IMG/VR virus record: IMGVR_UViG_3300022698_000267
Coordinates: 186,001-250,000 of that record
Strand: one strand, 5' to 3'
Length of the DNA: 64,000 nucleotides
Below the pieces are notes generated by a model. The model worked only from the letters and a program-made list of their open reading frames with translations, was not told the origin of the DNA and made no database searches. A program made the position numbers and the translations under genes. Below are positions 10,922 to 28,020 of the stretch, piece after piece (the first letter of the stretch is position 1; each line of letters begins with the position of its first letter).

Positions 10922-12534
10922 GTGATGCCATTAGCCGTTTTAGGAGAGGTAAGAAAGGTAATGTAGATACAGACTTATCTTCTGAAAAATTAATGTTATC
11001 TGCTGCAATACTCTCCACTAATTTTTGTAGAACTGTCTTTAGAAAGTATAAACCTGAATTTATACAAAATGAATTCATTAGAGATAGTATGAATTGGTGT
11101 ATGGACTATTTTCGTGAATTCGATAAAGCACCAAAATCCGATATTGAAAGAGTATTTGAGTATAAATCTTCTAAGTTAGATCCATCTAGTAAAGAACTTA
11201 TTGAATATCTTCTATTTTCCATATCACAGGATTCTAAGGGTTTAGTTGTAAGCGATCATAACTATGTTCTAAAAGAAACTTTAAAGTATTTCAGGAAAAG
11301 ACACTTAGATATAGCTTTGATGAAGTCTAGAGCTCTTTTAGATTCTGGAAATGTAGATAAGGCAGTAGAGTCTATTGCTGGTGAAAATTTTCAGGAAGAC
11401 CTAGCTTACGAAGGAAGATTAGAAGATATTTTTGACAGAGAAAGTATAGAATCTGCTTGGTCTAAGGTTGATACTGAGCACGTTTTTGCTTTTAGTGGAG
11501 GAGCAGCAACATTAAATAAACTAGTTGGTTACATTAAGAAGGGTTGGTTGATGGCTTTTTTAGCTCCTCCAAAGAGGGGTAAGACCAGTTGGTTATTAGA
11601 AACTGCCTGTCAAGCAATGTCTTATGGTGCAAAAGTCCTTTTTGTTAGTTTGGAAATGAATTCCAAAGCAATAAGACAGAGATTCTATTCCAGATTTTTG
11701 AATAAACCTTACGGTTCATTCCAAAGTGAAAGAAATTTTAAAACAGGTCCTGGAGGAGAACTGCTTTCTAGGATTCCATATATAGACTGTGAACACAATA
11801 AAAGTAATTCTTGTAAAAGAGAGGAAAGGACAAAATATAAGACAGAACATTACCCATCTGATGATGTGGAAGATACTGAAGCGCCTTGCTTTGGTTGCAT
11901 CTACAGTCCAGAGTCTGATTTTTCTTTTAGTGTTGAGTCCATATGGGTTGAAGTTAATTCAAATTCTTATGAAGCAGATCACAGAAGCTTGTTTGCTATA
12001 GGAAGGCATCTAAAAAGGTATCTTAGATTAGTCACTTATCCCAGTTTTCTTGGTGGGATTGATGATATACAACAGGATTTAGAGGTTGCAAAATCTCAAG
12101 GGTTTCGACCTGATGTGATTATAATAGATTATGCCGATATTCTAAAGCCACCAGGATTTGGAGGTGGTGATCCAAGACATAATCTGGATTTAATTTGGAA
12201 GACTCTAAAAGGTTTGGCGGAGGCAACTAATTCTGTAGTTATAACTGCTAGTCAGACTAATAGAAAGGCTGTAGAGGAGAGGAGAATAGGACAAAAGCAT
12301 GTTGCTGAAGATTTTAGAAAACTCGCACATGTTGATGTTTTTATGGCTATAAATCAAAACGATTTTGAAAAGGATATTGGAATAAAAAGAATTAATGTTA
12401 TAGCCCATAGGCATAAAGATTTTTCTGAGAATGTAGAGTTGAATTTAACTGAAGCTTTACATATGGGTCAGGTTTGTGTTAGTTCCATTATTCCACCCAG
12501 AAAGAAGAAAAAGGAGGAAGATGAAGATGAGTAA
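10918..12534 (+). CDS. dnaB: Replicative DnaB-like helicase with a Cys-rich insertion
   Basis: APPKRGKT Walker A, SLEM, IIIDYAD, ASQTNR. Confidence 0.9.
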   Translation: MSDAISRFRRGKKGNVDTDLSSEKLMLSAAILSTNFCRTVFRKYKPEFIQNEFIRDSMNWCMDYFREFDKAPKSDIERVFEYKSSKLDPSSKELIEYLLFSISQDSKGLVVSDHNYVLKETLKYFRKRHLDIALMKSRALLDSGNVDKAVESIAGENFQEDLAYEGRLEDIFDRESIESAWSKVDTEHVFAFSGGAATLNKLVGYIKKGWLMAFLAPPKRGKTSWLLETACQAMSYGAKVLFVSLEMNSKAIRQRFYSRFLNKPYGSFQSERNFKTGPGGELLSRIPYIDCEHNKSNSCKREERTKYKTEHYPSDDVEDTEAPCFGCIYSPESDFSFSVESIWVEVNSNSYEADHRSLFAIGRHLKRYLRLVTYPSFLGGIDDIQQDLEVAKSQGFRPDVIIIDYADILKPPGFGGGDPRHNLDLIWKTLKGLAEATNSVVITASQTNRKAVEERRIGQKHVAEDFRKLAHVDVFMAINQNDFEKDIGIKRINVIAHRHKDFSENVELNLTEALHMGQVCVSSIIPPRKKKKEEDEDE

Positions 12535-13486
12535 ATCCATATGTCCGATTTGCGAGGAGAGATTCAGTGATGTTCTGTCCCATATACTTTCAACAGATGA
12601 TCAAGCACATGCAGATATTATAGCTAGTGTGCATGAGGTCATAGATGCTTTGGTTAACACCAGAACATATGTTGGTGAAGTGGTAGAAATACTTAAGGCC
12701 AAAGATCCAAGATTTTGGTTTGTAACATATGGTTTTGTTGCAAATTATGTGAAGAAAAAGATTGGTTCAGACAGAGTTCATGGCTTTTTGGATAGTGCAA
12801 AAGAAAAACAACCAACTCCAGAATTTCTTGCAACGATGGAAGAAAGTGTAGAAGATTTGAAAGCTTTGTGGATACCTGGAAGTTATGCTAAAGTATTATC
12901 TCAGATTTTGTCAGCAACTAGTGCTAATCCCACTGCTTATCTTTCACATTTCCAAGATTTGAGTTTTTGTAGTATTTGTGGATCTAATAAAGATGTTAGA
13001 GCAACATTTGTCGATGAGGATAGCCAGAATATCCTAATTTCAAACATGGAACCTTTATGTTCCGATTGTAAATCATTAGAAATTTTAGAAGGCGTCCTTC
13101 CATTTGCTACAATAAGTAAAGATTTTTCTTTTGCTGGAGCTCATAAACTTCCAGACTATGATGGCGATTGTAACTTCTTGCATGGACATGAATGGAAATT
13201 TACGGTATCTGTTCGAAAAAGAATTAATCCTATCACCGGAATGATAATTGATTTCAAGAAATTAAAAGCAATTGTTAATGCGAATATTGTTGATCTTCTT
13301 GACCATTCTTATCTCAATGACTTTTTTCCAAATCCTACTGCTGAGAACATTGTGGTATGGATGTGGGAGAGGTTGATGTTTGATGGTTTACTTAAAGGGT
13401 TGGAATCTATTAGACTATGGGAAAGTCCAACTAGTTTTATAACACTTACTAAACAAGATATGTTATCAGTCTTTGGGAGGATGTAA
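12527..13486 (+). CDS. queD: 6-carboxytetrahydropterin synthase QueD fused to N-terminal Zn-finger/degenerate HNH domains; start moved to ATG 12527
   Basis: FAGAHKL, CNFLHGH, DHSYLN, PTAENI and WESPTS in the C-terminal ~130 aa; AGGAGG RBS. Confidence 0.9.
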   Translation: MSKSICPICEERFSDVLSHILSTDDQAHADIIASVHEVIDALVNTRTYVGEVVEILKAKDPRFWFVTYGFVANYVKKKIGSDRVHGFLDSAKEKQPTPEFLATMEESVEDLKALWIPGSYAKVLSQILSATSANPTAYLSHFQDLSFCSICGSNKDVRATFVDEDSQNILISNMEPLCSDCKSLEILEGVLPFATISKDFSFAGAHKLPDYDGDCNFLHGHEWKFTVSVRKRINPITGMIIDFKKLKAIVNANIVDLLDHSYLNDFFPNPTAENIVVWMWERLMFDGLLKGLESIRLWESPTSFITLTKQDMLSVFGRM

Positions 13487-14160
13487 TGTTTTCACTTTAT
13501 AGCATTTTTGATTCAATCGATGGAGAAGTAAATGCTTTTCATCAAGGAGTTCTTACCACTTTTATTAGATTTTCTCAGTGTAATTTATCATGTAAGTGGT
13601 GTGATACACAATATGCCGCAAAGAGATCAGATGGTATGGAAATTAGTTTGTCTAATCTTTTAGAGGATCTCTTTGCTTCCAGAGGGGAAAAATTAAAGAA
13701 AGTGACAATTACTGGTGGTGAGCCTTTACTACAAGAGGAGTTATCTACTCTATTGCAGGAATTAGTTGCTAGAGATATTAAAGTTTCAATAGAAACTAAT
13801 GGAACTTTAGAACCGATTCAACAATTCGTAGGTATTCCAGAAGTTTGTTGGGTCTATGATTTTAAGTTGAAGAATTCTGGGCAGCGTAATAGAATGAATT
13901 TAAATGCTTTTGGATTCCTTTCGAAAAATGATTTTGTAAAGTTTGTTGTTGGGAGTTCTGATGATGTTAAAGAAGCTATGGATGTAGGAAAGGTTCTAAG
14001 AGAAAATGGTTGTGAAGCAAAGTTTGCATTTTCTCCAGTACATGACGAATTTACTCCACAACAGCTTTTAAGGGAGATTGAAATTTATGGTACTGGAGAT
14101 GAAATTATAAACCTCCAATTACATAAGTACATTTGGGGAATAACGAAGGAAGAACACTAG
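13486..14160 (+). CDS. queE: 7-carboxy-7-deazaguanine synthase QueE (radical SAM)
   Basis: SIDGE, CNLSCKWCDT, TGGEP, ETNG, QLHKYIW. Confidence 0.93.
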   Translation: MFSLYSIFDSIDGEVNAFHQGVLTTFIRFSQCNLSCKWCDTQYAAKRSDGMEISLSNLLEDLFASRGEKLKKVTITGGEPLLQEELSTLLQELVARDIKVSIETNGTLEPIQQFVGIPEVCWVYDFKLKNSGQRNRMNLNAFGFLSKNDFVKFVVGSSDDVKEAMDVGKVLRENGCEAKFAFSPVHDEFTPQQLLREIEIYGTGDEIINLQLHKYIWGITKEEH

Positions 14161-14177
14161 AGGGGAGGAATTTAAAA

Positions 14178-14885
14178 ATGGTTAGAGCACTGATTCGAGA
14201 ATCTTATCAAGCTTTATTGGAAACAAAATTGGTTCCAGGTGTAGAATCGAAAGAATTTGATATGGAGAACGATGATTTACAGAAGCTATGTGACAGTTTT
14301 CTAGACTCTGTTGAATTGGTTCCTATTGAAAAGGAACAATTAATTCCACCAAAAGTTATTGATTTATACAATGACATTGTGGATGGAATAGTTGTGGTTA
14401 CTGAAACTTCTACGGCTGCTGAGCCATCAAAAGAGGAAGAGAAGAAGCCAGAGGTATCAGAGGAGGATGAAAAGTTGATCTCTTCTGCTCAAGAGAAAGT
14501 TGCTAAAGAACTTCTTGAAGATAAAGATGGATCAAAACCTGAACCAAAGAAGGCTGAATCAAAGAAGGCTGAATCAAAACCTGAACCAAAGAAGGCTGAA
14601 TCAAAACCTGAACCAAAGAAGGCTGAATCCGATTCTGACACTGGTATTAATATTTTTGGTAGAAGAAAGAATAGCAAGTACGGATTCATTGATGAAAAGC
14701 TTTTAGAAGGCATTACAATGGATAGTTTGGTTTCTATAGTTTCCGAGAAATTTGATATGGATCCAAAGAAAACGTTGGGAACTATAAAAGCTCATATTCG
14801 AAATGTCACAAATAAAAGAAACGAAGCCGATTGTTTGGAGGAAGAGGATGGAATTCTTCGTTTCGTCCAGAAGGAGGCTTCATAA
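14178..14885 (+). CDS. Acidic hypothetical protein with KPEPKKAES repeats; start moved to ATG 14178
   Basis: GGAGG RBS; low-complexity linker and helical C-terminus. Confidence 0.7.
   Translation: MVRALIRESYQALLETKLVPGVESKEFDMENDDLQKLCDSFLDSVELVPIEKEQLIPPKVIDLYNDIVDGIVVVTETSTAAEPSKEEEKKPEVSEEDEKLISSAQEKVAKELLEDKDGSKPEPKKAESKKAESKPEPKKAESKPEPKKAESDSDTGINIFGRRKNSKYGFIDEKLLEGITMDSLVSIVSEKFDMDPKKTLGTIKAHIRNVTNKRNEADCLEEEDGILRFVQKEAS
14532..14630 (+). repeat. Coding tandem repeat (27-bp unit tcaaaacctgaaccaaagaaggctgaa plus partial copies)
   Basis: Seen directly; encodes SKPEPKKAE repeats. Confidence 0.9.
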
Positions 14886-15688
14886 TGGATGAGTTGATGG
14901 ACGTACAAAAAACTAAACCTATTCATCAAATACCAATAGATTTTGTTGGGATTGGTGGATTCAAACTTCCAATTTGTGTTAGCACAAAGGCAGGACCATA
15001 TCAAAATACCATTGCAGATGTTACTGTGTATGGAAATCTTCCAGCAGACAAAAAAGGGATTGATATGAGTAGAATCCCAATAGCTATACAAAAGTTTTCT
15101 GGTCAAAGATTAGATGTCAGTGTAACGAATGAAGTGGCCGAACATATACGAAGAAAGTTGGAAGTAGATTTGTGTAAAGTGACTTACAAATTCCCTTATT
15201 TTCTACAAAAGATTGCACCTGTGAGTAGAGAGCCCGGAATAGTATCTTATGATGTAACATTTCATCTAATAAAGACAGAAGACTCTTCTGATTTTTATAT
15301 GTCTATAGTTGTCTTTGGCACTAGTTTGTGTCCATGTAGTAAAGAAATCAGTGAAAATTCGGCGCATAATCAAAGGGTTCGGGTTAAAGTAGGTTTAAAA
15401 CCATTTGCTGATCAATTCATATGGATAGAGGATATTATAACTCTTGTTGAGGCTTCATGCTCTGGACAAATGTACAGTGTTTTAAAAAGAGTGGATGAAA
15501 AGCATGTCACTGAAACAATGTACGATAATCCAAAATTTGTAGAAGATATTATACGGGAATGTGCTTTCCGACTATCTTTAGAAAAGTCAGTGGAAAAGTA
15601 CAATATTACTGTAAGTTCTCAAGAAAGTATTCATCAACATGATGCAATTGCTATTGTGTCTGGAAAGAATGGGGTCGATAATGACTGA
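14885..15688 (+). CDS. folE2: GTP cyclohydrolase I type FolE2; start moved to ATG 14885
   Basis: KGIDMSR, SLCPCSKEIS..SAHNQR, KRVDE, PKFVEDIIR, ESIHQHDA. Confidence 0.93.
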   Translation: MDELMDVQKTKPIHQIPIDFVGIGGFKLPICVSTKAGPYQNTIADVTVYGNLPADKKGIDMSRIPIAIQKFSGQRLDVSVTNEVAEHIRRKLEVDLCKVTYKFPYFLQKIAPVSREPGIVSYDVTFHLIKTEDSSDFYMSIVVFGTSLCPCSKEISENSAHNQRVRVKVGLKPFADQFIWIEDIITLVEASCSGQMYSVLKRVDEKHVTETMYDNPKFVEDIIRECAFRLSLEKSVEKYNITVSSQESIHQHDAIAIVSGKNGVDND

Positions 15689-16310
15689 ATGGAAAAGTGA
15701 GGTTCGAATTGAAAATTCACTTCCTGTACAAGGTTTGAAACTTCATGTTGGTTGTGGCAGAAGAATTCTGGAAGACTATATAAATATTGATATAACCAGA
15801 ACGCTTTTGAAAGACTTAGATCTTTTCCTTTCCGATTCTGAAGTCAATTACATAAATCAAAGTTTTATTGAATGCTCATCTGATGATATGCCTCTACCAG
15901 ACGAATGTGCTGCTGAGATTCTATGTGAACATACTCTAGAACATCAAACTCCAGAAGAGATATATGAAACTCTATGGGAGTTTGCCAGAGTATTAAAGCC
16001 TGATGGTATACTAACTGTTTCTGGTCCAAATTTCGCACACTTTGCTAAGACATTCGATAAGTACAAAAACAACTATCTGGATTCCATTGATGTTATGTAT
16101 GCAATTCTTTGTAATACCAGAAATGTTAAAAGAATGTCACCCCATAGAAGTTTATTGTGGGCAGAGTTTCTGGTTCCATTGGTTAGAAGGAGTGGTTTTA
16201 CTATCCTGGAGGTTATAGAAAATGATGAACTGAAAATTATAGCTTCTAGAGATAGTGATCGAGTTGTTAGGGTCCTTAATGTCCAAGGAGGTGAAAAAGA
16301 TGAAAGTTAG
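15681..16310 (+). CDS. Class I SAM-dependent methyltransferase (type 11-like); start moved to ATG 15681
   Basis: LHVGCG motif I, INIDI, EHTLEH, RVLKPDG. Confidence 0.85.
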   Translation: MTEWKSEVRIENSLPVQGLKLHVGCGRRILEDYINIDITRTLLKDLDLFLSDSEVNYINQSFIECSSDDMPLPDECAAEILCEHTLEHQTPEEIYETLWEFARVLKPDGILTVSGPNFAHFAKTFDKYKNNYLDSIDVMYAILCNTRNVKRMSPHRSLLWAEFLVPLVRRSGFTILEVIENDELKIIASRDSDRVVRVLNVQGGEKDES

Positions 16311-17262
16311 AAACTTTGCAAAAACCATAATGACAAATTTTAGTTATGGTGTACAAGAGATTTCAACTGATATTGATTTAGATCAAGCTTCGGAAATCTT
16401 AAATTGTATGATTGATATTAAGGAAAAACCGGAAGGTTTTGTTCCAAAATTGAATACTATGGATTTGAAGAGTCTGGGGTTGAATGAACGTGCTGACTTT
16501 GTTCTTCTGCTAACTGGAGGGTTAGATAGTACACTAGCCTACTTTCGTCTACTAGATGAAGGTTACAAATCTATTTTTCCAATCTACGTAGATTTTGGAC
16601 ACCCTTATGCAGAGAAAGAAATTAAGGCTTTGCATAAATTGAAAATAGATTTTTTCTATTACAAAGAAATTGTTCCAGTTCGATATGATGGTCCTTGGGA
16701 ACATATTATCCCAGCCAGAAATTTATATCTTCTTGGAATAGCATCTGAAATAGCCAGAGACGGTGGTGAAATTTGGATATCTTCCGTTGCCGGAGAGACA
16801 CCAGAATATGGTGGAGACAAATCTTTGACCTTTTACAAACAAGCTCATGATTTGATAAAAACAACTTCTGGGAAAGATATTTCCATAAAATGTATGAATG
16901 AAAGAACAAAGTCCGGTTGGGTTTCATGGTTTTTAAATGAATGCCTGATGGATGAATTGACATACGAAGATAAGGTGGGAATTTTAAAAACCACAGTTTC
17001 TTGTTTTTCAGGGCACAGTCATTTGAATTGTGGGAAATGTAGAGCTTGTCTTAGAAAATGGATATGTCTAACATACAATGATGTAGATTGTGACGATATG
17101 TTTGAAGTTCATCCATATCATGGTGCTGGTGAGTTAGTACAAGAGTACAAAGACAGAATGAGCGTTGCTTTACAAAACAGCGATTTCTCATACTTTACTA
17201 AAAATAGGTGTAAAGAGACTTTGTCGGTTTTCAAAAGATTTGAAGAAGGACTTCTTTCTTAA
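16300..17262 (+). CDS. queC: 7-cyano-7-deazaguanine synthase QueC with N-terminal extension; start moved to ATG 16300
   Basis: TGGLDST PP-loop, IPARN, and SC...CGKCRAC Zn site. Confidence 0.85.
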   Translation: MKVRNFAKTIMTNFSYGVQEISTDIDLDQASEILNCMIDIKEKPEGFVPKLNTMDLKSLGLNERADFVLLLTGGLDSTLAYFRLLDEGYKSIFPIYVDFGHPYAEKEIKALHKLKIDFFYYKEIVPVRYDGPWEHIIPARNLYLLGIASEIARDGGEIWISSVAGETPEYGGDKSLTFYKQAHDLIKTTSGKDISIKCMNERTKSGWVSWFLNECLMDELTYEDKVGILKTTVSCFSGHSHLNCGKCRACLRKWICLTYNDVDCDDMFEVHPYHGAGELVQEYKDRMSVALQNSDFSYFTKNRCKETLSVFKRFEEGLLS

Positions 17263-17288
17263 AATAAAAGATTTGGAGGGTTTTTCCT

Positions 17289-18419
17289 ATGAGTAAGAAA
17301 ATAAAAATTGCAATTATGGGCCTTGGAAACTGTTCGTGTTCTCTCATCCAAGGCATTCACTACTATTCGAAAGATGAACATATGCCAAAAAATCCAGAAG
17401 ATCCAAAAGATTTTGTACCTGGATTAATGCATTGGGATTTGGCTGGTTACAAACCAGGTGACATTGAAGTGGTTGCAGCATTTGATGTTGACAGACGAAA
17501 GGTTGGTCGTGACGTATCGGAAGCTATTTTTCAAAGACCTAATTGCACGAAGGTTTTTGAGCCAGATATTCCTGAGTATGGGGTTACAGTTCATATGGGT
17601 GTAATTTTGGATGGAGTTGCTCCACATATGGCAAATTATCCAGAAGATTGTGCATTTTCCACGGCTAATGAAATACAACCTTCTAAAGAGCAGATAGTTG
17701 AGATTCTAAAAAAATCTGAAGCTGATATTGTCGTAAATTACCTTCCAGTTGGTTCCCAAAAAGCTGTAGAATTCTATGCTGAATGTACATTAGAAGCTGG
17801 TTGTGGTTTTGTGAACTGCATACCAGTTTTTATTGCAAGTGATCCAGAATGGGAAGAAAAGTTTGCTAAAGCAAATTTGCCCATTGTTGGTGACGATATC
17901 AAGTCTCAGGTTGGAGCTACGATTGTACATAGAATTCTTACAGATCTTTTCAAGAAACGTGGTGTTCCTTTGGACACGACTTACCAGATAAATTTTGGTG
18001 GAAATACAGACTTCTTAAATATGTTGAATCGAGATAGACTGGTTAGCAAGAAAATCTCGAAGACAGAAGCTGTACAATGTCAAGCAAAACACAGATTGTC
18101 CGATAGAAATATTCATGTTGGACCAAGCGATTATATTCCATGGTTAGATGACAATAAGATCTGTAATATTAAGATGAATGGTCGTCTATTTGGGGATGTT
18201 CCAATGGATATCGAACTTCGGCTTTCAGTGGAAGATTCACCAAATTCTGCTGGTGTGGTAATCGATGCTGTTCGTTGCTGTAAATTGGCTCTGGACAGGG
18301 AAACAGGTGGATGTGTGTATCCAGCTAGTGCTTATTTCATGAAACATCCACCCAAACAATATCAGGACGATGTTGCTTACCGATTGGTAGAATCGTTCAT
18401 TATAGGAGGAACAGAGTGA
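17289..18419 (+). CDS. ino1: myo-inositol-1-phosphate synthase
   Basis: GLGNC, NYLPVGS, GDDIKSQVGATIVHR, GGNTDFLNM, SKKISKT, EDSPNSAG. Confidence 0.96.
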   Translation: MSKKIKIAIMGLGNCSCSLIQGIHYYSKDEHMPKNPEDPKDFVPGLMHWDLAGYKPGDIEVVAAFDVDRRKVGRDVSEAIFQRPNCTKVFEPDIPEYGVTVHMGVILDGVAPHMANYPEDCAFSTANEIQPSKEQIVEILKKSEADIVVNYLPVGSQKAVEFYAECTLEAGCGFVNCIPVFIASDPEWEEKFAKANLPIVGDDIKSQVGATIVHRILTDLFKKRGVPLDTTYQINFGGNTDFLNMLNRDRLVSKKISKTEAVQCQAKHRLSDRNIHVGPSDYIPWLDDNKICNIKMNGRLFGDVPMDIELRLSVEDSPNSAGVVIDAVRCCKLALDRETGGCVYPASAYFMKHPPKQYQDDVAYRLVESFIIGGTE

Positions 18420-19183
18420 ACTTTTTCTTAGATAGTGGTGCCTTTTCTGCTTTTACTCAAGGTTCAGCCATAGATCTAGATTCATACATCTCTTTTATCA
18501 AACAAAATGAAAAGGATGTGACAGTTTACGCAAATTTGGATGTTATTGGTGACGTCGAGGCCTCTTGGGAAAATCAACGATATATGGAAAGCAAAGGATT
18601 AACTCCATTGCCAGTTTTTCACGTTGAAGATCCAATAGAATATCTATACAAATGTATGGATTATGATTATTTCTGTCTTGGTGGTATGGCTTCTGCTACA
18701 ATGGACCTTCGAATTAACTTTTTAGATAAATGCTGGTATATTATCTGTGATACACCAGACAACATGCCAAAAAACAAAGTGCATGGTTTTGGTATGACCG
18801 CACATAAATTGATGTTTCGATATCCATGGTATTCTGTAGATAGTACTAGTTGGTCGCAGACTGCAGGATTTGGAAACATTTTTGTTCCAAGAAAAACGGT
18901 GAATGCTGAATTTGATTTCACAGAACCTCCTTTCAAAATATCTGTTTCAGATGAAAGTCCCAGTAAATCCGAATACGATATTCATATTGAAACTGCAACT
19001 GATGCTGCTAGAGAACACATCTTGAAATACTTTGATTTGATAGGTATAACTGAAATTGGTGTGAAAACCAGTCATTGGAATAGACGATATGTGAATGTCA
19101 CTTTCTTTACTGGTGTTGCTAAGGCACTAACTTGGCCAAGGCCATTCAAACCAAAGTTGATTAATAAAGGCTTTGGTCTCTAG
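18416..19183 (+). CDS. dpdA: TGT-fold transglycosylase, DpdA-like (deazaguanine insertion); lacks the usual N-terminus
   Basis: FLDSGAFS, NLDVIGD, PLPVFH, CLGG, HGFG and PWYSVDSTSW; located in the que cluster. Confidence 0.7.
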   Translation: MNFFLDSGAFSAFTQGSAIDLDSYISFIKQNEKDVTVYANLDVIGDVEASWENQRYMESKGLTPLPVFHVEDPIEYLYKCMDYDYFCLGGMASATMDLRINFLDKCWYIICDTPDNMPKNKVHGFGMTAHKLMFRYPWYSVDSTSWSQTAGFGNIFVPRKTVNAEFDFTEPPFKISVSDESPSKSEYDIHIETATDAAREHILKYFDLIGITEIGVKTSHWNRRYVNVTFFTGVAKALTWPRPFKPKLINKGFGL

Positions 19184-19195
19184 GAGGAATTTCAA

Positions 19196-19435
19196 ATGAT
19201 TATGTATTTTGTAACGGATTTTAATCCAAAGGATGCCGATTTATTTCATAGAGCCGGATCTGAAGACATTCTGGTTTCTTACTGGGTTTTGCAAAGTGGA
19301 AGGGATCCTGAGGGGAAAATCAAGGCCTTTTATGATCAGCTACATGGGTTAAAAGAACCAAAATTGCAATACACTGAAACTGGGGAAGTAATAAAGTCTA
19401 AAAGGGGGAATTCAGATGAAATCGAAGACGATTGA
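19196..19435 (+). CDS. Small protein, possibly the detached N-terminal segment of the TGT-like enzyme
   Basis: MYFV....L..AG...ILVSYW pattern; GGAGG RBS. Confidence 0.5.
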   Translation: MIMYFVTDFNPKDADLFHRAGSEDILVSYWVLQSGRDPEGKIKAFYDQLHGLKEPKLQYTETGEVIKSKRGNSDEIEDD

Positions 19436-19595
19436 AGAAATTCGTAAAGAGATTCGTGAGCTTGAAGAATTAAGAGATTCTGGAAATCCTCCTTCTGATG
19501 AAATTTTTGAAAAATTGGATTCTTTATACAATCAAGAACTGAAACTGTTGGCTACACATATTGATAAGAAGGAGGATAGTTCTAATGAAAGTTAA
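19416..19595 (+). CDS. Small coiled-coil protein (59 aa; below the ORF-track cutoff)
   Basis: Hand-translated MKSKTIEEIRKEIRELEEL...SSNES*; fills the gap and overlaps both neighbours. Confidence 0.6.
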   Translation: MKSKTIEEIRKEIRELEELRDSGNPPSDEIFEKLDSLYNQELKLLATHIDKKEDSSNES

Positions 19596-20616
19596 GGACT
19601 TGAAAAGCATATGTCAGAAGTTACGTCCTGGTTTAGATAGACAGAAGTCTTTGATAGAGCATTTCAGACATATCTGTTTTACTGGAAAACGAATTATTAC
19701 ATTCAATGAAAGAATCTGTGTTGCATATCCATTTGAAACAAGTTTTTCATGTTCGGTTTCTGGACACGATTTTATTAATATGATTTCTAATCTTCCTCAG
19801 AATGAAGACATAGTTATTCGAATGGTCAAAGATATGCTGCGAATTCGTGGTGAAGGCACTAGTATTAAGATGTCTACTTACAATGACCAGAAACTTTCAG
19901 GTATATATGAAGATGCTTTCAATAAAGATTTTGAATGGCTGCCTCTTCCAGAAGATTTTATGGAAGCAATTAACCTATGTCATTTCACAGTTGCCAAAGA
20001 TTTAACCAGGCAATATCTTAACTACATCAAAATATCTGCTTCTGATGTAACAAGTTCTGATAATTTAAGAATTTCTAAATATAACTTAAAATCTGCAGTA
20101 GAAAAAGACTTTTTTATCCCAGGTAACGTTTGTAAACCTCTGCTACAGTACAAGGTTACTTCTTTTTGTATATCCGAGCCTTGGTTAGGATTTAAGACCG
20201 ACGATGATATTGAATTCTTTTGCAGAACTTCTGATATTGAATATCCAGATGTTTCTGCTCTATTTGAATTCGAAGGTGAAACTTTTAATCTGCCCACCGA
20301 ATTAAAAGCCATAGTTGAATCATTAACAGTTGTAACAGAGGAGGATTTTTTAACGGACAGACACATGACGGTGACTATAAAGGACAATATAGTATCCTGT
20401 TTTGTCGAGAAAGAGACTGTGTCGGCAAATAGGTGGGTTGAAACCGATATTAACAGGGAATTGTCATTTGTAATTAACCCAGTATTCTTCAATGAAATAT
20501 TGGAGAAAACCCGAACCATAAAGATTTCAGAAGGGAGAGCTCTCTTTATGGCGGGTAATTTCAATCATCTTCTAGCGCTTCCGGTTAAGAGTAAAGGAGA
20601 AAGTAATGATTCTTAG
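19585..20616 (+). CDS. DNA polymerase sliding clamp (beta-clamp-like); start moved to ATG 19585
   Basis: ~340 aa, alternating beta/alpha pattern, SSDNLRIS and EYPDVSALF segments typical of DnaN-like clamps; lies next to pol and clamp loader. Confidence 0.65.
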   Translation: MKVKDLKSICQKLRPGLDRQKSLIEHFRHICFTGKRIITFNERICVAYPFETSFSCSVSGHDFINMISNLPQNEDIVIRMVKDMLRIRGEGTSIKMSTYNDQKLSGIYEDAFNKDFEWLPLPEDFMEAINLCHFTVAKDLTRQYLNYIKISASDVTSSDNLRISKYNLKSAVEKDFFIPGNVCKPLLQYKVTSFCISEPWLGFKTDDDIEFFCRTSDIEYPDVSALFEFEGETFNLPTELKAIVESLTVVTEEDFLTDRHMTVTIKDNIVSCFVEKETVSANRWVETDINRELSFVINPVFFNEILEKTRTIKISEGRALFMAGNFNHLLALPVKSKGESNDS

Positions 20617-23347
20617 TACTGAAGGTTTCTTCTTTAAAGAACCAACCTTGGCGGAGAAAAAAGCGGCTAGGAAGAGGGATTACAGTAAAGGTAATTCATC
20701 CAAGCCAAAGAAAAAAAGAGCAGCTTCTGGAAGTACAAAAACTGTTGATCAAAAATTGAAAGATAATCCTTGTGAAGTTTGTGGTCTTTACAAGAAAGGA
20801 TGTGAATCTCCATTCATGCAGTATACAGGAGAAGGAAGAACAAAAGCCCTTATTATTGGGGAAGCTCCAGGTGCTGCAGAAGACGCAAAGTGGAAAAAAT
20901 TGGGATATGATGTTCCAACTCAGTTTATTGGTGATGCTGGACAACTTCTTAGAAAGGAACTTCGTCTTCTTGGGTATAATCTGGATAAAGATTTTTGGAA
21001 GGTAAATGCTTGTAATTGTAGACCTCCTGGGAATGCCACACCAACTACCAAACAATTGAAAGCCTGTTGGAATTTCATAGTAGAACCAACCATTAAAAAG
21101 TTGAAACCAAAGGTCATTTTTCTAATGGGAGGAGCAGCAGTTGCTCAATACTTTGCAAAAATCTCTGGAAGTAAGAATGTTCTTGGTATAAATAGATGGA
21201 GAAGGCTTTGTATTCCAGATTTGGATTACGATGTTTGGGTAGTTCCTCTATTTCATCCGTCTTTCATTTTAAGGAAAAGAAATGATGCAAATCTAAAATC
21301 GGTTTATCAAAGAGATTTAAAATTTGCAATTTCTGCCATTTCTAAACCAAAGATTGAAAGAATTGATTATGAATCTAAAGTAGAAATTGTAAAAGATTTT
21401 GATAGAGTCTGTGAGGTTTTAATAGAAGCTAGAAAACAGAAGTTTATAGTTTTCGATTTTGAAACCTCTGGAAAGAAACCTTATGATTCTAAACATAGAA
21501 TATGGTCTATGTCTTTAGCTTGGAACAGAGAAAAGGCCTATTCTTTTGCTTATCAATATCCTGGATGTTGGACAGATGAGCAATTAAAAACAATTCAGAT
21601 ATTAGTTGCTGAATTATTAAATGATGAAAATGTTTTAAAAGGTGCACACAACCTGAAGTTCGAGCATCTTTGGTCTTGTAAATTCTTTACGGAACCGAAG
21701 AATTGGATTTGGTGTACTATGTTAACTGCTCATATTTTAGATAATAGGGGTGGTATTAGTGGATTAAAATTTCAGGTTTTCTATAGATATGGAATTCCAG
21801 ATTATGGAGCTAGTCTACATCAACTTATGATAAAGAAGGATCAGAATGGATTAAATCTATTGTATAAAGCTGATCTGGATGAATTGCTATTATATGGTGG
21901 ATTAGACAGTTTGTTCACTTTCATGCTGTTTGAGGATCAAAAATTAGAGCTCAGACGTTATAAGAATACGTTAAATATGGCTCATCCATTTTTTCATAAA
22001 GGCATTCTGGCTTTAGCAAGGGCTGAAATGAATGGATTTAATGTATCCATGGATTTTTATGAAGAAAAAGATGGAGAGCTTGCTGACCAGATTGCAGAAA
22101 TAGAGCATCGATTAGTTAATGGAGATTATGGTTCCAAATTTAGAGAGATAGAAGGAAAGGATATAAATCCCAGATCTACTTCCGATATTAAAAAGTTATT
22201 CTTTGATATTCTAAATATGAAACCTTTGAGAATGACTGACAAAGGGAATCCTGCTTTAGATAAATCTTGTATGGAAGAATGGAATCTACCATTTACCAAT
22301 GACATTCTACAGTTGAGGATGTTGGAGAAGATAAAAGGGACATATCTGGCTCAGTTTAAAAGAGAGGTTAATGAAGATGGAAGAATACACCCAAACTTTA
22401 ATCTTCACATTCCAAGGACTTATAGATCTAGCTCCAATGAACCAAATTTTCAGAACATTCCGGTTCGCAGCAAATTAGCAAAGGAAGTTACTAGAGGAGG
22501 AATAATTCCAAGTCCTGGTAACAGACTAATGGAAGGTGACTTTGGTAGCCTTGAAGTTAGAATTTCTGCTTGTTATCATAAAGATCCCAATATGTTAACG
22601 TACATCAATGATCCCACTACTGATATGCATAGGGATAGTGCAGCTGATATTTGGCTGCTAGAAACAGATGAAGTTTCAAAAGATATTCGATTTTATGCTA
22701 AAAATGGTTGGGTTTTCCCACAGTTCTATGGTGATTGGTATGATTCTTGTGCAAGGGGATTATGGGGTAATTGCTTAGAATTACAAACGGAAAGAAATAT
22801 AAGTTTATATGATCATATTAGGTCTAAAGGAATTAAAAATCTGGAAGATTTTATTGCTCATTGTAAAGATGTGGAAGACAAATTTTGGAACGTTCGTTTT
22901 AAAGTCTATAAAAAATGGAAGGATAAGATTAATAAGCAGTATAGAGATCAGGGTTACATAGAAACATACTTTGGTTTTCGTCTCGGTGGATACATGGGGA
23001 AGAAGGATGTTACTAATTATCCTATACAAAGCAGTGCTTTCCATTGTCTTCTATGGTCATTCATTAGGGCAGATGAAATAGCTCGTAAAGAAAGATGGAA
23101 GAGTAAGTTGATTGGTCAAATTCATGATAGTATTATAGCCGATTTGCATCCTGATGAAACGTATCATGTCATTGACACTTTGAATAATATTATGAATGTT
23201 CAAATGCGAGAAGAGCTTCCCTGGATTATTGTTCCTTTGGAAGTGGACTTTGAACTAACTGGAATAGATCAACCATGGTCAACGAAGGACGATTTTGATC
23301 TATCGCAATTATCAATTAAAAAAGAGGAAGAGGAGATGATGCTATGA
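20606..23347 (+). CDS. polA: Family A DNA polymerase with N-terminal family-4 uracil-DNA glycosylase domain and 3'-5' exonuclease
   Basis: UDG: CEVC, GEAPG, CRPPGN, HPS; exo: DFETSG, HNLKFE; pol: DFGSLEVR, KNG..FPQFYG, QIHDS. Confidence 0.95.
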   Translation: MILSTEGFFFKEPTLAEKKAARKRDYSKGNSSKPKKKRAASGSTKTVDQKLKDNPCEVCGLYKKGCESPFMQYTGEGRTKALIIGEAPGAAEDAKWKKLGYDVPTQFIGDAGQLLRKELRLLGYNLDKDFWKVNACNCRPPGNATPTTKQLKACWNFIVEPTIKKLKPKVIFLMGGAAVAQYFAKISGSKNVLGINRWRRLCIPDLDYDVWVVPLFHPSFILRKRNDANLKSVYQRDLKFAISAISKPKIERIDYESKVEIVKDFDRVCEVLIEARKQKFIVFDFETSGKKPYDSKHRIWSMSLAWNREKAYSFAYQYPGCWTDEQLKTIQILVAELLNDENVLKGAHNLKFEHLWSCKFFTEPKNWIWCTMLTAHILDNRGGISGLKFQVFYRYGIPDYGASLHQLMIKKDQNGLNLLYKADLDELLLYGGLDSLFTFMLFEDQKLELRRYKNTLNMAHPFFHKGILALARAEMNGFNVSMDFYEEKDGELADQIAEIEHRLVNGDYGSKFREIEGKDINPRSTSDIKKLFFDILNMKPLRMTDKGNPALDKSCMEEWNLPFTNDILQLRMLEKIKGTYLAQFKREVNEDGRIHPNFNLHIPRTYRSSSNEPNFQNIPVRSKLAKEVTRGGIIPSPGNRLMEGDFGSLEVRISACYHKDPNMLTYINDPTTDMHRDSAADIWLLETDEVSKDIRFYAKNGWVFPQFYGDWYDSCARGLWGNCLELQTERNISLYDHIRSKGIKNLEDFIAHCKDVEDKFWNVRFKVYKKWKDKINKQYRDQGYIETYFGFRLGGYMGKKDVTNYPIQSSAFHCLLWSFIRADEIARKERWKSKLIGQIHDSIIADLHPDETYHVIDTLNNIMNVQMREELPWIIVPLEVDFELTGIDQPWSTKDDFDLSQLSIKKEEEEMML

Positions 23348-24891: not shown

Positions 24892-25917
24892 ATGGCATCA
24901 ATTAGAGAAAAAATGAAGGAAAAGCTCGCCAATCGTGTAAAACAATCTTACAATAGAAGGGAAGGGCAAAATAAGTCCTACTTCAAATCAGACATTGACG
25001 CTAGCTTTTGGAAGGTGTCAGAGGATGATCATATTATTGATATTATCCCTTATCTGGCAGGTGAATTCGATCCATTAACCAAACCTGGCGATCCAACCTA
25101 TGCATTGGAAATTTATGCTCATCAGGGTGTTGGCACAGATGAACGTGCAATGATTTGCATGTTGGAAAATTATGGCAAACCTTGTCCAATCTGTGAGCAT
25201 CGAAAGGAACTGAGAAATCAGTATCCAGATGACAAAGATATGTGGAAACATTTGTATCCCAAACGTAGAATGGTTTACAATATTGTTTGTTACGACTCCA
25301 GAAAAGAAGAGGACAAGGGTGTTCAAATTTGGGAAGTGGCTTGGTGGTTCACTGAAAGGCACTTTGTTAAACTGGCCAGAGAATCGAAGAGACCGGGACA
25401 TGGCGACACTACTTATATTCCTTTCGCTGATCCAGATGATGGAAAAATGATCTCCTTTAGTCGTGAAGGTCAGGGTGCTCAAAATACTTCATTTGTTGCT
25501 CATAAATTTGTTGATAGAGATGTTCCAATTTCCAATGAGATTTTGGATGCAGCACATATCTTGGATGAACTTTTGTATCTACCAACTTACGAAGAAGTTT
25601 ATGAGTTGTATTACCAACAACCCCCTCCTTCTTCTAAAGAGGAAGAAAAACCAGATGGTCCAACTAGGGGAGGTTCTGTGAAACCTGAACCGAAACCTGA
25701 ACCGAAACCTGAACCGAAACCTGAACCGAAACCTGAACCGAAACCTGAACCAAAACCGGAACCGGAACAGAAATCTGAATCTACAACTTCCGATGGTGAA
25801 GAAATTCCTCAATGTCCTGGTGGAGGGGAGTTTGGAGTTCACACTGATGAACTAGATGCTTGTGAGAATTGTAGCCTCTGGCCACCTTGTGCGAAGAAGA
25901 ACGATCAGAACTCATAA
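24892..25917 (+). CDS. gp32-like single-stranded DNA-binding protein with PEPK linker and Cys-rich tail
   Basis: IDIIPY, C...CPICE Zn motif, YNIV, DPDDGKMISFSREG. Confidence 0.75.
   Translation: MASIREKMKEKLANRVKQSYNRREGQNKSYFKSDIDASFWKVSEDDHIIDIIPYLAGEFDPLTKPGDPTYALEIYAHQGVGTDERAMICMLENYGKPCPICEHRKELRNQYPDDKDMWKHLYPKRRMVYNIVCYDSRKEEDKGVQIWEVAWWFTERHFVKLARESKRPGHGDTTYIPFADPDDGKMISFSREGQGAQNTSFVAHKFVDRDVPISNEILDAAHILDELLYLPTYEEVYELYYQQPPPSSKEEEKPDGPTRGGSVKPEPKPEPKPEPKPEPKPEPKPEPKPEPEQKSESTTSDGEEIPQCPGGGEFGVHTDELDACENCSLWPPCAKKNDQNS
25681..25768 (+). repeat. Coding 12-bp tandem repeat (aaacctgaaccg)n encoding (KPEP)n
   Basis: Five perfect units plus degenerate units. Confidence 0.95.
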
Positions 25918-25941: not shown

Positions 25942-25996
25942 AAATGGTGATATGTCTATTTTGCGTATCACCATTTTTATTTACGGGGGAATTACG

Positions 25997-26857
25997 ATGA
26001 AAAAGGCATTATTAGTTGGTATAAACGAATATCAAGGGTCTCCTTTAAAGGGGTGTGTCAACGATTGTTTGTTGATGTATAAAATGCTCACCGAAGAATT
26101 TGATTTTGAAACCAAGGACATTAAACTGCTTACAGACCATGAGGCCACACAAGACAGAATATTGCTTGGTTTGTCAGCTTTGACGAGTGATGTACAACCA
26201 GGCGACACTATATACTTCCATTACAGTGGACATGGTTCTCAGGTGGCAGTAAATGATTGGACAGATAACTTTGAACCTGATGGAAGGGATGAGATTTTAT
26301 GTCCTGTGAATTTAAATTGGGATTTTCCTCTTAGAGACCAGATGGTTGGCAGTTTTTTCAAAGATTTACCAAAGGAAGTAAATGTGGTTGTTGTTTTGGA
26401 TTGTTGTCATTCTGGTACTGGTCTCAGGGCTCCAATTAATTCAAATTTAGATGGACCAAAGTGGTTAGCAAACCGGTTTTTGCCACCTCCCCCATCTAAA
26501 CTTCTTTCTAATCCATTAATTCGAGTTGATGCAGACATGAATTTTATACTTCCAGAACCAACTGAGGATCTTAGATCTATAAAGCGTCCTTTCTTGGTTG
26601 ATACAGTAGAACAGGGACATGTCATTTTAATTACTGGTTGTCAAGACAATCAGACTAGTGCAGACGCATATCTAGCAGGTACTTATCGTGGAGCTTTAAC
26701 TTATTGTCTATACTACGTCCTTTCAAAAAGGAAATTTAACATGAGTTATGAAAAACTAGTCATAGAGATCAATCGTTTGTTAGATAATAAACGATATGAC
26801 CAAAATCCACAATTAGAATGTCTTCCTGAATACAAAAACAGAAAATTTTTGGGATAG
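25997..26857 (+). CDS. Caspase-like peptidase C14 (metacaspase); start moved to ATG 25997
   Basis: KKALLVGIN, LKGCVND, HYSGHG (His), DCCHSG (Cys), QTSADA, GALT, QNPQL. Confidence 0.93.
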   Translation: MKKALLVGINEYQGSPLKGCVNDCLLMYKMLTEEFDFETKDIKLLTDHEATQDRILLGLSALTSDVQPGDTIYFHYSGHGSQVAVNDWTDNFEPDGRDEILCPVNLNWDFPLRDQMVGSFFKDLPKEVNVVVVLDCCHSGTGLRAPINSNLDGPKWLANRFLPPPPSKLLSNPLIRVDADMNFILPEPTEDLRSIKRPFLVDTVEQGHVILITGCQDNQTSADAYLAGTYRGALTYCLYYVLSKRKFNMSYEKLVIEINRLLDNKRYDQNPQLECLPEYKNRKFLG

Positions 26858-26865
26858 GAGGACTC

Positions 26866-28020
26866 ATGGCAGAATCTAAATTAAAAAGAGATAAAAGGCA
26901 GAAGTTAAAAGAAGGCTTAGCCGGAGCAGAGGAAGTGACTAAAAAAGAAGAAGCTAAAGCAAAAGCGGCTATTGACAAAAAGACCAAAGAACAAATGCAA
27001 GAAATTGTTGATGAAGTCATTGAAACTTCTATCGAACAAGACATCAGCGATTTAAACGAACCCATACCTTTGGAAGAAGATTACTTAGTTTCTACTGGAT
27101 CCACTTTATTGGATCTTAATATTTGTGGAAGTAGGATTAGAGGTGGGGGAATACCTGCAGGTATTCTATGTGAATTCTTCGGTCCAAGTGGATGTGGAAA
27201 AACAGCTGTTCTTTCTGAAATAGCTACTAGTACACAAGTTAGAGGTGGAAGTGTACTTTATGCTGATCCAGAAGCTCGTTTGGATAGAAATTATGCTGAA
27301 ACGTATGGGTTGAAAATCAATGAAGATGAGTATTCACGTCCAGATACGGTTTCACAACTCTTCGAAGTTCTTTGGGGTTGGAAGCCAAAGAATCCGAATG
27401 TGATAAATACGATTGCTTCAGATTCTCTTGCAGCTCTTTCCACAGAATTAGAAATGGATTCAGCAGACAAAATGGGGATGAGAAGAGCAAAAGAGTTCTC
27501 AGAAGGTCTTAGAAAGACGTGTAGGATCATTAAGAACAAAAAGTATATCATAGCATGCTCGAATCAAATTCGGGGTGGTACAGGGGGTACAGTAACTCCA
27601 GGAGGAAATGCAGTGCCTTTCTATGCTTCACTTCGAGTTTCCATGTGGCCTTTACATTCTGAGAAAGTGCAAATAACCAAGGAACTTCCTAGCGGAAAAA
27701 GGGTTCCCAGAGTTATTGGTATTAAATCTTCCTGCGAAATTATTAAATCTTCAATTGATAATCCTTTTAGGACATGCGACATTTACATTATTTTTAATCA
27801 TGGAATTGATGACATTCGAGGAAATTTACAATGGAGGAAAGATGTTACTGGTGATACCAAGTATGATGTCTTCGATAAAGGTTATGTAGCAATGAATGAT
27901 GCTATTAGATACATCGAAGCTCAGGATTATGAAGACAAACTTAGAGAGGAGGTGATAGATCTTTGGGAAGAAATTGAAAAGAAATTTGTGATTACTCGGA
28001 AGAAAAAGAAACGTAGATAG
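26866..28020 (+). CDS. recA: RecA/UvsX recombinase
   Basis: STGSTLLD, GPSGCGKT, DSLAAL, NQIR, TPGGNAVPFYAS. Confidence 0.93.
   Translation: MAESKLKRDKRQKLKEGLAGAEEVTKKEEAKAKAAIDKKTKEQMQEIVDEVIETSIEQDISDLNEPIPLEEDYLVSTGSTLLDLNICGSRIRGGGIPAGILCEFFGPSGCGKTAVLSEIATSTQVRGGSVLYADPEARLDRNYAETYGLKINEDEYSRPDTVSQLFEVLWGWKPKNPNVINTIASDSLAALSTELEMDSADKMGMRRAKEFSEGLRKTCRIIKNKKYIIACSNQIRGGTGGTVTPGGNAVPFYASLRVSMWPLHSEKVQITKELPSGKRVPRVIGIKSSCEIIKSSIDNPFRTCDIYIIFNHGIDDIRGNLQWRKDVTGDTKYDVFDKGYVAMNDAIRYIEAQDYEDKLREEVIDLWEEIEKKFVITRKKKKRR

Follow-up and report, generated by a model that had tools for sequence, protein, structure and literature searches.

Phage DNA can be shielded from restriction by 7-deazaguanine modification, of which DpdA is the signature enzyme. 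Here we describe a dpdA gene in a stretch of 64,000 nucleotides (the window) that spans positions 186001-250000 of a single 273,563-bp contig (IMG/VR record IMGVR_UViG_3300022698_000267; G+C content 35.8%), whose source is, judged by gene content, a large phage genome. The gene encodes a protein of 255 amino acids (aa), hereafter the core, and is followed by a gene for a 79-aa protein; all genes around the core lie on the + strand (Table 1). An earlier reading of the sequence alone (the sequence-only reading) had suggested a two-piece enzyme with its genes in reversed order or, alternatively, a regulatory fragment. Our in silico analysis supports the former proposal, to which we assign a probability of roughly 70%, by the truncated fold of the core, the homology and conservation of the small protein, natural fusions in relatives and a controlled complex prediction.

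Table 1. Features around the dpdA core gene, with positions in the window
Feature	Position	Strand	Basis or remark
Helicase, primase and DnaB-like genes, in this order, ahead of the 7-deazaguanine cluster		+	Pfam/NCBIfam matches
7-deazaguanine synthesis cluster, upstream	12476..18419	+	Pfam and NCBIfam matches
QueD-like gene	12476-13486	+	Pfam/NCBIfam
QueE gene	13486-14160	+	Pfam/NCBIfam
Lys/Glu-rich open reading frame (ORF) between the QueE and FolE2 genes		+
FolE2 gene	14831-15688	+	Pfam/NCBIfam
S-adenosylmethionine (SAM)-methyltransferase gene inside the cluster	15639-16310	+
QueC-like gene	16255-17262	+	Pfam/NCBIfam
Inositol-3-phosphate-synthase homologue	17289-18419	+	TIGR03450, E 2e-133, below curated cutoff
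Shine-Dalgarno sequence AGGAGG of the dpdA core	18404..18409	+	6 nt before the GTG start; read from sequence
dpdA core gene, 255 aa	18416..19183	+	Barrel strands 3-8 and C-terminal helical region
Junction: dpdA stop TAG / AGGAGG of small gene / ATG	19181-19183 / 19182-19187 / 19196	+	TAG overlaps AGGAGG; sequence
79-aa small gene ('N-seg')	19196..19435	+	Predicted strand 1, helix 1, strand 2, helix 2, then acidic tail
59-aa ORF, acidic, helical	19416-19595		Between small gene and clamp-like gene
Replication genes: sliding-clamp-like ORF, UDG-PolA polymerase	19561..23347	+	Clamp loader also downstream

The shortened dpdA gene

The product of the core gene opens directly at a strand carrying the motif FLDSGAFS. 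This abrupt start, already remarked upon in the sequence-only reading, is confirmed by a GTG codon that follows a Shine-Dalgarno sequence and overlaps the stop codon of the upstream gene, by the starts of homologues and by a structural alignment to tRNA-guanine transglycosylases (TGTs) that begins at TGT residue 97. Indeed, since the three closest homologues begin at the same point, the short N-terminus is not a start-codon artefact. An in-frame N-terminal extension was ruled out, as no start codon precedes the GTG at 18416 in its frame back to the preceding stop and the region upstream codes for another gene. The short form is common, with ~95 of the 120 best database homologues starting within 5-25 residues of the DSGAF motif. 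Another ~22 of these 120, plus the proteins of Escherichia phage SeppeHuegi and Alteromonas phage R7M, are full-length and carry ~57 extra N-terminal residues, namely a hydrophobic first strand, a helix and an L-x-S-Y-aromatic second strand, in agreement with the sequence-only reading, which described a first strand and an L-x-S-Y segment before LDSGAF in full-length homologues. Genes of isolates comprise ~305 codons, and the core query aligns with their products from about residue 58 (SeppeHuegi, R7M, PSASB_03, NP1, Erebus). Apparent C-terminal extensions among the 120 best homologues were considered as fused modules and dismissed, as they are internal insertions instead.

By sequence, the core belongs to the phage DpdA1 proteins. 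It matches PHROG 887 (queuine tRNA-ribosyltransferase) with E 1.3e-50, over profile positions 57-278 only, and tblastn retrieved 243 phage records at 35-39% identity that are annotated as DpdA or queuine tRNA-ribosyltransferase. The core has no match in Pfam (including TGT) or NCBIfam (including DpdA), and it falls outside the bacterial DpdA model NF041059, for which a full-length relative reaches only 19.5 bits against a cutoff of 200. Searches of PDB sequences with the core and with the full-length profile returned nothing useful.

The AlphaFold2 (AF2) model of the 255-aa chain (predicted local distance difference test score, pLDDT, 89.4) has six barrel strands, so that the complete barrel of a lone core, which would have spoken against a two-piece enzyme, was not obtained. 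The best structural matches (Foldseek and VIA) were all TGTs (probability 1.0, Z 12.7-13.1). Residues 1-240 of the model align to residues 97-365 of the Zymomonas mobilis TGT (Z 12.9, root-mean-square deviation 3.0 Å, 205 residues), and human QTRT1 aligns from residue 100 (Z 13.1). Because the alignment begins at TGT residue 97, the first ~96 TGT residues, i.e. the region of strands 1 and 2, have no counterpart in the core. The fold is thus that of a TGT-type TIM barrel with six of its eight strands, the full barrel appearing only in the predicted two-chain complex described below.

The core starts five residues before the equivalent of TGT Asp102, and D6 (LDSGAFS) maps to the Asp102 position in the structural alignment, in which model residue 1 corresponds to TGT residue 97. 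D142 (SVDSTSW) is, by its motif and its position after the last strand, probably the equivalent of TGT Asp280. Both catalytic-type aspartates are invariant in an alignment of 40 homologues that share the short N-terminus (N-short). The cysteine cluster of the zinc site (CxCxxC...H) is absent from the 255-aa sequence. At its other end, the ORF stops at the natural C-terminus of the family, which marks the TAG at 19181-19183 as a true stop.

The small protein and its predicted place in the barrel

The arrangement of the dpdA stop codon and the Shine-Dalgarno sequence of the small gene (Table 1) is kept in two related loci, L006 (with TAA) and L004 (with TAG). Four diverged relatives retain the gene pair. 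The order of core, small gene and clamp gene is kept in L006, L090 and L004, whose cores are 76%, 76% and 58% identical to that of the window. Four close homologues of the 79-aa protein share 62-75% identity with it, and L004 has a more distant one. When the window is compared with L006, the proportions of nonsynonymous (pN) and synonymous (pS) differences are 0.16 and 0.73 for the small gene and 0.145 and 0.67 for dpdA, with synonymous sites saturated; judged by these values, purifying selection acts on the small gene as strongly as on dpdA. Neither a second dpdA nor any N-seg-like ORF besides the single member of the 79-aa family is present in the 273-kb genome. No Pfam or PHROGs model recognises the small ORFs, and a tblastn search of GenBank phages with two of them gave no match.

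A hidden Markov model (HMM) of the N-terminal extension was run against 80 viral loci holding DpdA relatives, where it strongly matched dozens of separate ORFs that are 50-100 aa long (E down to 1e-12), and after iteration the resulting N-seg family counted 153 matches, all of them on the dpdA strand and none on the opposite one. The alignment of the 79-aa protein to full-length N-termini, proposed earlier as a check, was weak when made directly; when the 79-aa family was compared by hhalign with 111 N-seg ORFs, the two aligned Met1 to Met1 over 55 columns (Prob 89%, P 2.1e-6; reversed-sequence control P 0.22). An N-seg family HMM built without any member of the 79-aa family also aligned the window ORF globally from Met1 and ranked it first among 5,515 ORFs of the genome, with a score tied with that of an out-of-frame, 10-column match elsewhere in the genome. 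The latter chance match lies inside another gene (window 27024-27116) and indicates that the L-x-S-Y motif alone is unspecific. Overall, the comparisons support homology, if a divergent one, between the 79-aa protein and the N-terminal module of DpdA. The small ORFs that accompany the full-length DpdA in phage SeppeHuegi were likewise considered as modules and ruled out, as they are unrelated to this module.

We then predicted the complex of the two chains, each with its own family alignment, in three runs and with three controls. The median interaction prediction score from aligned errors (ipSAE) was 0.90 (runs 0.88-0.91), compared with 0.00 for the best control; the partner had a pLDDT of at least 63, and the runs shared at least 83% of their contacts. 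Of 80 solved complexes, 58 attain this mark, as do 2 of 110 mismatched pairs; these counts are only a rough guide here, own alignments having been used. In the predicted complex, residues 2-6 of the small chain pair with residues 139-142 of the core (the last barrel strand), residues 25-29 pair with core residues 4-5 (the first core strand), and the first helix of the small chain packs on the C-terminal helices of the core. The resulting strand order, b8-b1-b2-b3, is the one expected for barrel closure, and the two-chain model therefore shows the completed barrel that the sequence-only reading had suggested looking for.

Based on these data, we propose that DpdA, the DNA guanine transglycosylase of this phage, consists of two separately made polypeptides. 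Besides strands 3-8 of a TGT-type TIM barrel, the 255-aa chain would contribute the C-terminal helical region and both catalytic-type aspartates. The 79-aa chain, probably translated from its own ribosome-binding site right after the dpdA stop codon, would fold as strand-helix-strand-helix and insert its two strands between the last strand of the core and its first one, thereby closing the eight-stranded barrel and adding the strand 1/helix 1 and strand 2/helix 2 loops to the catalytic face. Once assembled, the enzyme would replace guanine of the phage DNA with a 7-deazaguanine base that the neighbouring cluster supplies. Compared with full-length DpdAs, the genes of the pair would stand in circularly permuted order. 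Physical binding of the two chains, the need of the small chain for activity and the base inserted are what we infer here.

Natural fusions, module copies and rival explanations

Split enzymes are expected to have pieces that are conserved as neighbours and fused in some relatives, and both features were found. N-terminal fusions are the ordinary full-length DpdAs. In the opposite order, the dpdA gene of locus L008 (P0136, L008 3998-5083) has 361 codons that encode a short core with its natural C-terminal motif, a linker and an N-seg module closely resembling the small protein of the window, and no small ORF precedes the clamp gene in this locus. The same core-linker-N-seg fusion is present in P0138, whose tail is 85% identical to that of P0136; as this second sequence comes from a different contig, the fusion is not an assembly error. 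To judge from their sequences, P0136 and P0138 are natural single-chain, circularly permuted DpdAs in which the order of the modules is that of the genes in the window.

A tree of the cores groups the window with L006 and L004 with support, within a well-supported 19-row clade to which L008 and Edwardsiella phage ZHS belong as well. On this tree, the short and long states, labelled partly by eye, require six or more changes on well-supported branches, which means that fission and fusion were repeated events. N-seg-like ORFs were also counted in those dereplicated loci that extend at least 1.5 kb to either side of dpdA; four of these loci were reclassified by eye and the numbers are approximate. 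Such an ORF was found near dpdA in 44/44 N-short loci versus 13/23 loci with the long form (N-long; Fisher 4.6e-6, HMM and by-eye calls), and in N-short loci it usually starts at the dpdA stop codon. The 44 N-short cases consist of 37 HMM matches with E<1e-3, 4 weak HMM matches and 3 ORFs recognised by eye or homology; with HMM matches alone, the comparison is 37/44 versus 13/23 (p 0.019). Among cultured phages, Edwardsiella phage vB_EpM_ZHS (OM621816; L001 4286-4724) has a short DpdA of 266 aa, followed by two consecutive small 'hypothetical' ORFs that, judged by eye, show the pattern of a first strand and L-V-S-F, and one of them matches the N-terminal-extension HMM with E 7e-4. Other arrangements include two full-length dpdA genes in tandem (L044 2949-4879) and a dpdA ORF with two N-terminal modules in tandem before the core (L033 3719-4885).

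The modules are also present in multiple copies. About 150 unannotated N-seg ORFs (50-100 aa) flank dpdA in loci L007-L086, and many loci, including some with a complete DpdA, carry two to six paralogous ones (e.g. L011 3538-5470, L029 4831-6365 and L043 3461-3977). N-seg subfamilies keep their position, which is either directly upstream of dpdA, directly downstream of it, between clamp and polymerase or just before the polymerase; the position immediately after dpdA is occupied by family members in ~40 loci. In a single instance (L032 6380-8665), the UDG-PolA polymerase carries an N-seg module as an in-frame N-terminal fusion, and the same subfamily forms a separate ORF just upstream of the polymerase gene in other loci. 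This fusion, known from its sequence, hints at a tethering of the DpdA core to the replisome.

Several points weigh against a two-piece enzyme. Compared directly, the 79-aa protein and the N-terminal extension of full-length DpdAs resemble each other only weakly (HMM E 0.33; hhalign P 0.002-0.005), and the homology reaches significance only via the wider family of small ORFs and as a targeted test. The structure predictor may be replaying the single-chain TGT fold, in which case the complex speaks for compatibility and not for binding. The AF2 model of the fusion tail is strand-helix-strand-helix at a pLDDT of only ~61-65, the alignment being three sequences deep there. Moreover, N-seg-like ORFs, often several of them, also stand beside full-length DpdAs (the 13 of 23 loci above), so simple complementation cannot be their sole role. 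Alternatively, the 79-aa protein might dock on the core as an accessory (a regulator, specificity factor or tether), with the core retaining some activity alone or as a homo-oligomer. Such a role would suit paralogous N-seg ORFs beside DpdAs that need no complementation, their position-specific subfamilies, the fusion of one of them to a polymerase and the observation that in bacterial DpdA the loops after strands 1 and 2 (strand 1/helix 1 and strand 2/helix 2) line the DNA-binding face, where a contribution to sequence recognition was proposed (PMC10164549). However, a TIM barrel deprived of two adjacent strands would probably not be stable, the genome has a single N-seg and a single core, no N-short locus lacks an N-seg-like ORF and there is a natural fusion of the two parts; we consider a purely accessory role unlikely. 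The regulatory fragment named as an alternative in the sequence-only reading keeps some weight, given the related small ORFs beside complete DpdAs.

That the 79-aa ORF encodes an unrelated small phage protein, with a coincidental resemblance to the DpdA N-terminus and a coincidental interface, appears very unlikely to us. Even though its HMM E-values (0.33-0.44) are insignificant at database scale and an out-of-frame stretch of another gene scores equally through L-x-S-Y alone, the ORF aligns globally from Met1 with identical spacing to the motif, the hhalign P of 2e-6 contrasts with 0.22 for the reversed control, 153/153 family matches are on the dpdA strand, the ORF occupies the very position right after dpdA that the family holds in ~40 loci, the complex controls score 0.00 and the fused relative bears a closely similar module. 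Gene decay, which would make the 255-aa gene an inactive dpdA remnant and the small ORF a leftover gene fragment, could explain why the gene is shorter than those of the characterised DpdA1 enzymes of isolates, but is highly improbable given that both genes are under purifying selection at saturated synonymous divergence, that the catalytic-type residues are invariant across the 40 N-short homologues, that most of the 120 best homologues are N-short and that the full precursor pathway is kept adjacent. The shared reading frame of the two ORFs in the window, with only the TAG and four codons between them, together with the single-chain fusions in relatives, could also point to one circularly permuted protein made by read-through of the TAG. 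We rejected this scenario, which is barely conceivable: the small ORF has its own strong ribosome-binding site and ATG, the frames differ in L004 and L090 and the stop codon is TAA in L006, the standard code gives normal translations of long ORFs throughout the window, and the core ends where the family naturally does.

The two-piece enzyme may also be a special case of a more flexible system. If the free (beta-alpha)2 module were an exchangeable subunit, different modules could dock in turn on one core and, as carriers of the loops at the DNA-binding face, shift its DNA sequence preference; they could also tether it to the replisome. We regard this idea as tentative and rather doubtful. Under it, the phage of the window, with its one N-seg module, would be the minimal version of one core and one module.

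Known systems and the genome setting

The closest known enzymes are the phage DpdA1 proteins of the Enterobacteria phage 9g/CAjan/Seuratvirus type (Hutinet et al. 2019, PMC6884629), which belong to the same family (PHROG 887, 35-39% identity by tblastn), have the FLDSGAFS and VDS(T/S)SW motifs in common with the core of the window and are encoded in the same setting, beside FolE, QueD, QueE and QueC and upstream of clamp and polymerase genes. However, DpdA1 enzymes of isolates are single chains of ~305 aa with an N-terminal strand-helix-strand module, whereas the window ORF starts at the third strand and the putative module is encoded by the next gene downstream. Bacterial DpdA (structure from S. 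Montevideo, PMC10164549) and the TGTs of Z. mobilis and human (QTRT1), the latter being the best structural matches of the core, are complete eight-stranded, single-chain barrels with a structural zinc site (CxCxxC...H) described in PMC10164549, in contrast to the core, which has neither strands 1-2 nor the Cys motif. The zinc site is also lacking from the phage DpdA1 sequences of SeppeHuegi and R7M. The phage and bacterial DpdA papers PMC6884629, PMC10516641 and PMC10164549 are silent on a split, on a small subunit and on circular permutation.

The arrangement is a new architectural variant of a known enzyme family, and the layout occurs in dozens of uncultured phages. A division of the same superfamily over two genes is known for the archaeal archaeosine TGT, in which the catalytic and C-terminal/PUA parts are on separate genes. 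There, however, the break lies between whole domains, unlike in the window, where it would fall inside the TIM barrel, giving (beta-alpha)2 and (beta-alpha)6 parts in permuted gene order. Split or permuted TIM barrels have been engineered (HisF halves, fragment complementation), and natural circular permutants such as transaldolase exist; these are likewise assembled from separate fragments or have a permuted strand order. In DpdA, unlike in the engineered barrels, the split, the permuted order and the fused permutant would all be natural and occur in one family, with the free module in several paralogous copies.

If many phage DpdAs do need a small unannotated partner, a core gene expressed alone would fail and annotation would miss half of the enzyme. 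One natural family would show every stage of TIM-barrel circular permutation, from the full-length enzyme through the full-length enzyme with a downstream module copy and the split pair in permuted order to the re-fused permutant. It would also offer a free-standing quarter-barrel unit, long postulated by theories of barrel origin. The multi-copy modules, in turn, raise the idea of subunit swapping to retarget a DNA-modifying enzyme.

The core is linked to genes for 7-deazaguanine precursors, as QueD-like, QueE, FolE2 and QueC-like genes lie directly upstream (Table 1). In the QueD-like ORF (336 aa), the QueD domain is restricted to residues 212-325, and the ~210 N-terminal residues have no family match; L006 has a similar form of 326 aa. 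The QueC-like protein is atypical as well (335 aa), with only a partial QueC match (E 8e-12). No QueF was seen in the stretch examined, so no particular 7-deazaguanine is proposed as the inserted base. The inositol-3-phosphate-synthase homologue between the QueC-like gene and dpdA is kept at this place in L004, L005 and L090, whereas L006 lacks it. An enzyme that forms carbocycles, placed in a 7-deazaguanine cluster, might be a pointer to an undescribed hypermodification.

On the other side, the order of dpdA, small ORF, clamp and polymerase is common to the window and its relatives. The 59-aa ORF after the small gene was found in the window only, and is missing at the same position in L006, L004 and L090. 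The clamp-like ORF of the window has no Pfam match and is named by its position; annotated phages have genes labelled as polymerase beta or processivity subunits at the homologous positions. Further downstream, a 301-aa ORF (window 25952-26857) resembles, judged by eye from its translation, a caspase/metacaspase-type peptidase, and is flanked by an ORF with a Pro/Glu/Lys-repeat tail (24892-25917) and a P-loop ATPase-like ORF.

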